Below, in pieces: positions 58,919 to 61,900 of a stretch of DNA of 64,000 bases. The stretch is from the NCBI GenBank assembly GCA_964247055.1, contig OZ176053.1:5456001-5520000 (forward strand), given 5' to 3'. The DNA is from Paragordius varius (lineage: Eukaryota; Animalia; Nematomorpha). Each line of letters starts with the position of its first letter. The stretch's first letter is position 1. Position numbers and translations under genes: made by a program. Under the pieces are notes generated by a model that did no database searches, had not been told where the DNA came from, and worked only from the letters and a program-made list of their open reading frames with translations.

Positions 58919-61900
58919 GGTCATTATTGTAATAGCGTCCGCCCCCTCCTCCACCACCGCTGCTATATCCACCACGTGATCCCCCGCGATATCCGCCCCC
59001 TCCGCCTCCGCGACCACCTGATGAGCCTCGATATCCGCCGCCGCCACCACCTCGACCACCTCCATACCAACTTTTACCTCCACCAGACCCAGAATCATAA
59101 AAATCAGCTGGCAAATTCTCAAGTTCGCTCGGTAGCGGTTGTCCGGTTTGTAACTAATACAACACAAAACATATATATATTGAAAATTTAGCATTATATG
59201 TAGATGATGTGTAAGAAATACAAAATTGAAAAACTAACATCTAGATCCGTAGGAGTATCTAGGAATTATCTTATTTTCTCAAACTAATAATAAACTTTAC
59301 CGAGTGATTATAGGAAAGAGTGATAACTTGCTTATGATTATAATTAAAAAAGATATGATTTTTAATTAAAAAAGAGATAAAATACCAAAATCTTTTTGAT
59401 TTGTGGGAGGTACTTAACATTCTTGGGCGTAATGATGGTGTAAGATGTACCAGATCGACCACATCGTCCGGTACGTCCAATCCTGTGAACATAATCTTCA
59501 ATGCTGTGCGGAAAATCGTAATTTATTATGTATTCCACATCATCAACATCTAAAAATAATCAGCTAGGGTTAGGATTTAAGTGTTTATGGATAGTATAAA
59601 TTTTATAAACATTCAACCATATATATAATTTTGTAGTCACGCCACAGTTTATAAATTTAACTCAATCATTTATTAACCAAAAAGGGGTGTGATATATGTG
59701 TACACTAAAAGAGAAATAAAAAACCCATAAAAATATTAAAACGTTATTAAATTATTATACCATGTTTTACCAGACACGTATTGGCTCGCTCTCCTGTCCA
59801 AGAATGTGGATGAACAAACAAATTGGATTTTCTCTCGTGAAGTGATATATTTTAGTTTAAATGCGATTGGTGACAAAATTCTAAGGCGTAGCACTCGTTT
59901 TTCAATCCTTGAACCGCGTTGTTGAAAGGCAGCAGGCTGAAATTCTATCCATGAATATCATTATTACTAAATGTATATAATTCATCTATTCCCATTCAGC
60001 AAAAGAATTGTAGAATCGCATTTTACTGGCATAATATACACATCACCTCACTCAAAAAACCAAAATCCATATTCATCCCCCATTCTTGTTATATTGTCTT
60101 AGAAAATACCTTGGAAGTTTTTATTTACCTAACTTTGGCAAGTTTTAATTTTGTGTGTACACAATATAACACGATAAAAGCGATACCAATTTGGTTAACC
60201 CTGTATTAAAAAATAGATATATATATTTATATAAAGTAACAATATAAACTATAGATCAAATTATTAAAAGTTTAGGTTCTAATTCAATTATAATTTATTA
60301 TAACATTTTTAAAAAATATATACCTAAGCCTCTGGCAGCGACATCAGTGGCAATGAGTATTGGACATTTTCCTTCTCTAAAACCTAAAATTGATTAAAAC
60401 ATATAGGCATGAATGAAAAAGAAAAAAATCAAAATCTTACGTAATAATGTACGCTCTCTTTCGCTCTGAACCTTGTCCCCGTGAATGCAATCAGATGGCC
60501 ATCTAAGCAGAAAATATTAAAATATTGATTATTCAATATTTGAAATAAAATTTGTATGACAAAATTAATTTGTGTGTGGAATAATCGGTTTTAAACGGAA
60601 AATAGATCTAAACGGCTTAAATGTATTCTTTCATGGTTATAACAATTTCAAATAGAATATTAGCTAAAATTTCGCATTTTTATCATTTTAGGAGTTTATA
60701 ACATTATTTTACAATATTTATCATGTGATGAATATATGTTTAAAAACGGGTGATTGAATTACTGTCAACATTTTCACAGACCGATATGAAACCGACATTA
60801 TATCGCAATTATTTTCATTAAAATATTTTAAATTTACCCCATCTTTTGGGCTGAACGATTCATATTATCACAACTTCGTTTAGTTTCAACGAAAATCAAA
60901 AGTTTGTGTTCTTGACCATCCGAAATAATTTGAGATAGAATTTCACTCAATTTTCGATCTTTTTCGTTCTCCTGACATAAAACAAACTTTTGCGTAATGT
61001 TTTTATTGGCAGTAACTTCCAAACTGCCAATGTTAATCTGGATGTAATTACGAAGAAACTCATCGGCTAAAGTGTGAACCTCACGGGGCCAAGTCGCGCT
61101 AAACATAAGAGTTTGCCGATGTGGTGCCTAAATAATAGAAAATTTAATAAAAATTTAATATTATTGGTAATATATGTAAATGGCTAATAAATCTAAAGAG
61201 GTATTTAAAATAGATTCAAAAAACTACATGTTTAATTATAAAAATATTTTGCGTTTCTTTATACTATGACTTAATGCGCAGTATATTTAATATTTATTAT
61301 TTTTAAGTTGCCAAAAAAATTAGGCTTTAAGTAACAAATAATACCGTAATTTGCTTAACAATCTTGCGTATGGCTGGTTCAAAACCCATATCCAACATAC
61401 GATCTGCCTCATCCAAAATCAGAAAACTGCATCGCCTAAGGTTAGTTTTGTGCGACTCCATGAAATCCAAAAGACGCCCGGGACATGCGATAATAATTTG
61501 AGGGCCTAAGAAATATGAAATGGGATATTAAGAACTAATGTATAATCTTTTAGAGTCATTTTTAACAGTGTATGAAAAAAAGACGAGACCGCAAAAAAAT
61601 ATATTTTCAAATTAAAATAAATATTAAATGTTTTCACTCCTTTTTCCCAATAAAGTCCTATAAATAGTATTGCAAAAAGATTATTATAGTGAATGTTTTT
61701 AAAAGAAGGTTAACAGAACTTCACAAAAATGGGCAAGTTTTGATTCGTTTTAATAGTCATGTATCCTTTATTTTATTAAAAATTTATTTATTTTGTTAAA
61801 TGGAAATAAGTATTTGTTAAAAAATGGAAACAAAAACTCTCTGCTTTTAACATCAACATATTCATTCAAAATGAAAGAAGTGCGGGGGGAAAGGCGTCCA

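Follow-up and report, generated by a model that had tools for sequence, protein, structure and literature searches.

The long motif-V intron of a DDX5/DDX17/Dbp2-type helicase gene in the horsehair worm Paragordius varius

We examined 64,000 nucleotides (nt) of the genome of the horsehair worm Paragordius varius (assembly GCA_964247055.1, contig OZ176053.1, positions 5,456,001 to 5,520,000); this whole stretch is called the window below and is numbered from its first letter. Its minus strand carries a DEAD-box helicase gene of the DDX5/DDX17/Dbp2 type, whose ninth intron, 774 nt long, interrupts helicase motif V at the codon and phase used by the same intron in other animals. An earlier note, made from the letters alone, had taken this intron for the copy of an autoregulatory intron conserved from yeast DBP2 to human DDX5 and DDX17, and had proposed that it holds a poison exon and a constrained regulatory RNA. 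The features discussed are as follows (a slash marks a splice junction).

58406..63566 (-): coding region of the DDX5/DDX17/Dbp2-type DEAD-box helicase gene, from the gene model, Pfam, structure matches and exon tiling
58919..59153 (-): exon 11, encoding a Gly/Arg-rich (RGG) C-terminal tail; guanine plus cytosine (GC) fraction 0.57
59386..59549 (-): exon 10, 164 nt; supplies the "at" of the Asp codon, then motif VI
59550..60323 (-): intron 9, 774 nt, phase 1, with GT..AG ends; no other intron of the gene is as long or as GC-rich (0.28); orthologous to the conserved DBP2/DDX5 intron
59704..59721 (-): best-scoring decoy acceptor within intron 9, tttttatttctcttttag/TGT, first exon base 59704
59782..60110 (-): GC-richer single-copy core, 329 nt, predicted by folding to form a long imperfect sense-strand hairpin
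60129..60200 (-): candidate 72-nt cassette, acceptor ...tattttttaatacag/G, donor TAG/GTAAAT, in-frame TAA at 60147-60145
60201..60323 (-): 5′ segment of intron 9, 123 nt, GC 0.12; a (TA)n-like stretch at ~60213-60233 breaks read contigs
60324..60383 (-): exon 9, 60 nt; motif V, ending in ...ATDVAARGL followed by base 1 of the Asp codon

The helicase gene and its ninth intron

The gene model runs from 63566 down to 58406 and has 12 exons, with 1683 coding nt for a protein of 560 amino acids (aa). Its introns measure, in order, 41, 26, 145, 414, 744, 217, 335, 57, 774, 232 and 493 nt. Homology searches took single exons as queries, and single exons sufficed to match the Pfam domains DEAD and Helicase_C. 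Among solved structures, exon 7 matched DDX17 best (6uv0, E 2e-25), then Dbp2 (8ark, E 5e-16), with DDX3X far behind; exon 10 gave the same ranking, human DDX17 first, yeast Dbp2 second and DDX3X well behind. All exons, entered as separate rows, tile without gaps onto full-length DDX5/17-type proteins, at a core identity of ~60%. Because of this structure ranking, the gapless tiling and the RGG-rich tail, the host gene is, as judged from its sequence, an orthologue of DDX5/DDX17/Dbp2.

Intron 9 splits the Asp codon of ARGL/DV, in motif V, after its first base. The minus-strand reading and the explicit gene model thus bear out the 774-bp intron that the earlier note had placed at ARGL/DV, and all of its coordinates proved right. 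Retention of the intron would bring a stop after 8 codons. The intron had also been described as less AT-rich in its core than its neighbors, which is so: GC is 0.31–0.34 over 59700-60199, against 0.12–0.25 in the other ten introns of the gene. The richer composition sets in abruptly at ~60200 and continues at 0.31–0.36 from the cassette on to ~59780.

Candidate sites within intron 9 are read here against the gene's own splice sites. The 11 real donors are degenerate (GTA/GTT/GTC) and match AG/GTAAGT at 3–6 of 8 positions, while the real acceptors are TAG in all 11 cases and CAG in none. A scoring matrix was built from the gene's own 11 sites only. On this matrix the intron 9 donor, its own sequence excluded, scores well at 5.9, and the intron 9 acceptor has the lowest left-out score, 0.0. 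Top-ranked among the internal AGs of the intron is the decoy 3′ site at 59704 (tttctcttttag/T), use of which would lengthen exon 10 by 155 nt and bring a stop after 10 codons.

Other introns of the gene show features of their own. Very short ones (63442-63482, 41 nt; 63248-63273, 26 nt; 60384-60440, 57 nt) stand alongside those of 744 and 774 nt, and the 26-nt intron at 63248-63273 is required for the reading frame. Half of intron 3 (145 nt) is filled by a long (TA)n microsatellite, 63019-63092, where read contigs break. About half the length of intron 5 (744 nt) is taken up by a very high-copy element, 61755-62163; two samples show a read depth of ~1e5 there against ~400 on either side, and the contigs have numerous joints and loose ends. 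This element is a self-complementary foldback: blastn against itself gives an inverted repeat of 68% over 433 nt, and its local fold is the more stable on the minus strand (-93 kcal/mol, against -73 on the plus strand). It looks like a miniature inverted-repeat transposable element or a foldback repeat family. Just past the repeat, a weak match to the C/D-box RNA snoZ155 lies antisense to the helicase gene (62194-62261 of the plus strand, E 0.27, 29 bits where the gathering score is 43), mostly in intron 5 with its last bases in exon 5; it is probably due to chance.

The same intron in other genomes

A phase-1 intron at the same codon, the Asp of A(A/S)RGL/DV, was found in the genes of the lancelet Branchiostoma belcheri (a cephalochordate), the horseshoe crab Tachypleus tridentatus (a chelicerate) and the crustacean Daphnia magna. 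The junction pattern, ...R G L G/GT...AG/AT V, is identical in the hairworm and these three fetched animal genes. Partial gene calls made in other organisms (P0007, P0009 and P0010) read RG(L/I)G and then run on into unrelated sequence, as expected if the open frame there continues into an intron. In alignment, the split codon of intron 9 falls on Dbp2 residue 425, which we take to be the yeast intron site, on the presumption that the first exon of yeast DBP2 is 1273 nt long.

The orthologous introns are long in all three animals, at 2137 nt in Branchiostoma, 1699 nt in Tachypleus and 864 nt in Daphnia. The Daphnia intron (L003:3049-3912), the longest of its gene, is ~15 times longer than its resolved neighbors, which measure ~49 and ~61 nt, and this argues for selection on length or content in short-intron lineages; it shows length kept in a short-intron genome more cleanly than the hairworm does. 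Its fold has a z score of -1.94. The claim that the hairworm intron was kept long while others shrank is weak for the hairworm gene, where 8 of 11 introns exceed 140 nt, although the pattern is clear in Daphnia.

According to the literature, the position and length of this intron are conserved from yeasts to higher eukaryotes, it is poorly spliced, and it limits Dbp2 in Schizosaccharomyces pombe (PMC4695336). References for the conserved intron of DBP2, dbp2 and DDX5 (p68) are Iggo et al. (1991), Barta and Iggo (1995) and Moore et al. (2011), as these are cited in PMC4695336. Splicing of Dbp2's own intron is inhibited by Dbp2 (Barta and Iggo, 1995, as cited in PMC5393171), partially spliced p68/p72 pre-mRNA is under the control of p68 (PMC1920232), and in mouse cells the DDX5 intron is retained and reported without a poison cassette (PMC5737842). 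Together with the shared codon and phase in three animals and the alignment to Dbp2 residue 425, these reports uphold the conserved position that the earlier note had named.

The hairworm intron resembles this known system in gene family, in the Asp codon of ARG(L/I)D and, as far as testable, in phase; it too is long, the longest of its gene, and its retention too would lead to an early stop. It differs in that poor splicing, retention and feedback are known from yeasts and mammals, whereas the hairworm intron is known from DNA alone, and in that it yielded no protein-binding element of the Mmi1 type or any other known kind. A scan of intron 9 for microRNA-like hairpins gave none of note, whereas the human intron reportedly encodes a microRNA, to go by the title of Moore et al., 2011.

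The candidate cassette and the predicted hairpin of the core

The 72-nt segment with AG and GT flanks and a premature stop, proposed as a poison exon, is present as described. It spans 60200..60129, is preceded by tctattttttaatacag and is followed by gtaaat on its 3′ side; an alternative donor-like site, AAG/GTATTT, would give a 91-nt version ending at 60110. Inclusion of the cassette would bring a stop after 18 codons, at the TAA of 60147-60145, which lies >50 nt before two later exon junctions, exons 10–12 following. The stop itself adds no support, because stop codons are expected by chance in AT-rich intron sequence. Regulated inclusion of a genuine poison exon here, with the TAA leading to nonsense-mediated decay, would be one way for the intron to act; we consider it unlikely, on the following grounds.

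The splice sites had been called good; this stands for the donor, and the acceptor is mediocre by the standard of the gene itself. The donor, TAG/GTAAAT, agrees with AG/GTAAGT in 7 of 8 positions, which none of the 11 real donors equals, and only 13 donors per strand in the 64-kb window match at least as well. The gene's own weak donors nevertheless suggest that classic donor strength counts for little here. The acceptor is a CAG where all 11 real ones are TAG, is A-rich at -7 to -4, and scores -3.0 on the gene's own matrix, ranking ninth of the 28 AGs in the intron, with a better decoy acceptor available at 59704. Site pairs of equal stringency (a YAG with at least 10 of 14 pyrimidines, then within 30–300 nt a donor matching AG/GTAAGT at 7 or more of 8 positions, thresholds that were set after seeing the site) are scarce in the window: one on the minus strand and nine on the plus strand, or ~0.08 per kb, with ~0.06 expected in intron 9. 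At the quality of the gene's real and much weaker sites, however, such pairs occur at ~5 per kb.

Comparison with known systems points both ways. The plant gene DRH1, of the DDX5 type, autoregulates through cassette and alternative 3′ site variants (bioRxiv 10.64898/2026.01.23.701338), whereas the mammalian DDX5 intron is the one reported without a cassette (PMC5737842). Like the poison exons of SRSF3 and SRSF7, the hairworm segment is short, flanked by AG...GT, equipped with an in-frame stop and set in a long intron of an RNA-processing gene; unlike them, it is known from DNA and has an acceptor atypical for its gene, while the SRSF exons are embedded in ultraconserved sequence and have been observed in RNA. 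Almost nothing of the locus occurs in the sequencing runs guessed to be RNA, and no DDX5 of a related hairworm was found in the searches described below. We treat the cassette as one possible non-productive path among several, and not as a demonstrated switch. A 14-nt inverted repeat enclosing the cassette donor (60174-60161 and 60097-60084) was tried as a structural element and rejected, the local 146-nt fold having a z score of -0.48 and such repeats being common.

The rest of the intron had been suspected of being a constrained regulatory RNA. The stretch folded, 59760-60110, was the one named by the earlier note before any folding. On the sense strand its minimum free energy is -89.7 kcal/mol, a stability that not one of 100 shuffles matched (z -3.13); a second set, of our own shuffles, gave z -2.58. 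The antisense reaches -72.2 kcal/mol, so the sense strand is the more stable by 17.5 kcal/mol. The structure is a hairpin with arms at 60088-60038 and 59850-59799, an imperfect inverted repeat of ~50 nt, above a basal helix of 60110-60101 with 59794-59783. Its arms hold 41 Watson-Crick positions, five G-U and no A-C, and the ratio of 5:0 has p ~0.03, a value that depends on the alignment. By stability it ranks tenth among the local structures on both strands of the window. In this inverted-repeat-rich genome, however, 7 of 95 control windows reach z -2.58 and 4 reach -3.13, an empirical p of ~0.04–0.07, and the whole of intron 9 folds with z -1.67. The hairpin is thus only marginally unusual, and folding lends the regulatory RNA claim marginal support, with 4–7% of controls equal to it.

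Database scans lend that claim none. The Rfam, microRNA and small nucleolar RNA (snoRNA) scans that had been proposed for the core turned up nothing credible: a permissive Rfam search of 58000-64000 gave no credible match, and the sole match within 59550-60323, Six3os1_3 (E 0.14), scored 18.9 bits where the gathering score is 40. Features of a C/D-box snoRNA noticed by eye at 60060-59990 were rejected for want of a terminal stem. Nothing suggests that the short open frames of the core (52, 43 and 39 aa) are coding.

Could the core be a mobile element? The earlier note had seen no transposable element termini. In keeping with this, the core is single-copy by read depth, with no excess, no second copy lies within the 64-kb window, and no target-site duplication or duplicated flanks were found around it; against it, the core is bounded by the ~50-nt imperfect inverted repeat, whose arms fall below blastn detection in a DNA-level inverted-repeat scan. 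The single copy and the absence of duplicated flanks neither show nor exclude an old insertion.

A further reading gives the hairpin itself a part in regulation. In plants, a stem-loop called the DEAD motif hides an alternative 3′ site; DRH1, a DDX5-like helicase whose RGG tail is needed for this system, opens it (bioRxiv 10.64898/2026.01.23.701338). By analogy, the 329-nt hairpin at 60110..59782 might hide or position alternative splice sites, and its unwinding by the helicase might set the ratio of productive to non-productive splicing. The base of the hairpin does contain a donor-like AAG/GTATTT (60110) and an acceptor-like GGACAG/G (59793), though these sites were found by seeking them there; an RGG tail, as required in plants, is present in the worm protein. 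The z score of -3.13 for a stretch named beforehand, with no shuffle as stable, the 17.5 kcal/mol advantage of the sense strand, the five G-U and no A-C pairs and the tenth rank in the window all fit such a sensor. Yet z falls to -2.58 with our own shuffles, controls reach these scores in 7 and 4 of 95 cases, the repeat is too weak for blastn and matches nothing in Rfam, the p of ~0.03 for the G-U count shifts with the alignment, the hairpin is predicted from a single sequence, and the 146 nt around the cassette donor fold at only z -0.48. We hold a sensor of this kind to be very unlikely.

The hairworm intron shares with the plant motif (DRH1/RH46) the type of helicase, DDX5-like and RGG-tailed, and a stem-loop that carries splice-site-like sequences at its base; non-productive cassette, alternative 3′ site and retention variants, too, are conceivable in the hairworm. 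The plant element, however, is short, conserved in sequence, proven by mutation and compensatory mutation and described as plant-specific, whereas the hairworm hairpin is 329 nt long, has no known relatives and is only marginally unusual. The specific version, in which the hairpin would sense helicase activity through decoy sites in its base and unwinding by RGG-tailed DDX5 would open the non-productive path, we regard as highly improbable. To our knowledge, structure-sensing feedback has so far been shown only for plant DRH1; were it true here, it would be an animal feature too, and perhaps the ancestral logic of the motif-V intron.

A possible feedback role and other features of the window

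Gene identity and the position and phase of the intron are direct results of this analysis; what the intron does is drawn from its relatives. We see intron 9 as the hairworm copy of the ancient Asp-codon intron of DDX5/DDX17/Dbp2 genes, and that it acts, by retention or another non-productive path, seems to us about as likely as not, and likelier than any of the rival readings. By homology with the yeast and mammalian work, feedback is the role it would most likely have. The intron would be spliced slowly, and with the helicase abundant more transcripts would keep it or be spliced non-productively. Each such product would carry an early stop, after 8 codons with retention, 18 with the cassette and 10 with the decoy at 59704. 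The transcripts would be degraded or left untranslated, and helicase output would fall.

Several results weigh against this feedback role. The four orthologous introns (hairworm, Branchiostoma, Tachypleus and Daphnia) have no sequence in common. The length of intron 9 alone is weak evidence, because seven other introns of the gene exceed 140 nt and intron 5 reaches 744 nt. The splice-site scores of intron 9 give no clear sign of a deliberately weak intron. Where sequencing runs contain the locus, they behave as DNA, their contigs passing straight across introns; almost nothing of it occurs in those guessed to be RNA. A profile search with full-length orthologues and each worm exon as a row reached arthropods and chordates and no hairworm.

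Narrower searches for the DDX5 of a related hairworm had a similar outcome: word searches with exons 10 and 7 found nothing close, an exact look-up of the exon 7 open frame gave no match, and an exhaustive representative search with exon 7 found only relatives at ~55–60% identity. One small run labelled as the same species and guessed to be RNA (X6) holds unitigs of 31–59 nt at high depth that match exon 9 only (~60322-60383), with 2–7 mismatches, and that end exactly at the 3′ edge of the exon (60324); they are probably from another DEAD-box gene or another organism. A run from a close relative or strain (X5) holds the locus in patches at 92–100% identity. Its listed piece for 59419-59851 shows 13 differences, and none of the pieces listed covers the cassette. 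One sample (S2) shows no differences over 58480-60550, which points to a shared haplotype and not to constraint, because that span takes in three introns.

Intron 9 might instead be an ordinary constitutive intron at an inherited position, with no regulatory role in this species, its cassette and hairpin being due to chance or to a decayed foldback or inverted-repeat insertion that would also explain its GC content. Neither cassette nor hairpin stands clearly above genomic background, the Rfam and hairpin scans were empty, and the GC-richer block, framed by inverted repeats, has a sharp onset at ~60200; the very high-copy foldback in the 744-nt intron 5 shows that insertions into the introns of this gene do occur. 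Against this, the core is single-copy and lacks a target-site duplication, the orthologous intron is functional in fungi and mammals, and the Daphnia copy is ~15 times longer than its neighbors. An ordinary intron seems to us rather unlikely.

The motif-V intron of DDX5/Dbp2 genes is among the oldest known cases of an intron kept for regulation. What is new here is the motif-V intron in another phylum; otherwise it is the expected orthologue of a well-known intron, with a candidate exon. Overall the earlier note was right about the orthologous gene and the conserved position and phase of its intron, while its claim for the core RNA has marginal support and its claim of a length specially kept is weak in this gene. 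A long motif-V intron in a horsehair worm, and in a water flea whose other resolved introns are ~50–60 nt, widens the known range of the intron. Both animals belong to lineages under strong intron-shrinking pressure and are thus good places to ask which part of the intron is needed. Should retention, cassette or hairpin prove active, the 774-nt intron would be a compact model for helicase feedback.

Two further features of the window lie outside the helicase gene. The strongest local structure on both strands is a near-perfect palindrome at 41928-42155 (~-99 kcal/mol; z of about -10 to -20 in the controls). At 5093-6122 and 45141-46170, 40,048 nt apart, are two copies of one pair of open frames, the first of 192 aa and the second, which contains a DDE_3 transposase domain (E 1e-14), of 146 aa; the two copies are either Tc1/mariner-type elements or part of a large duplication.

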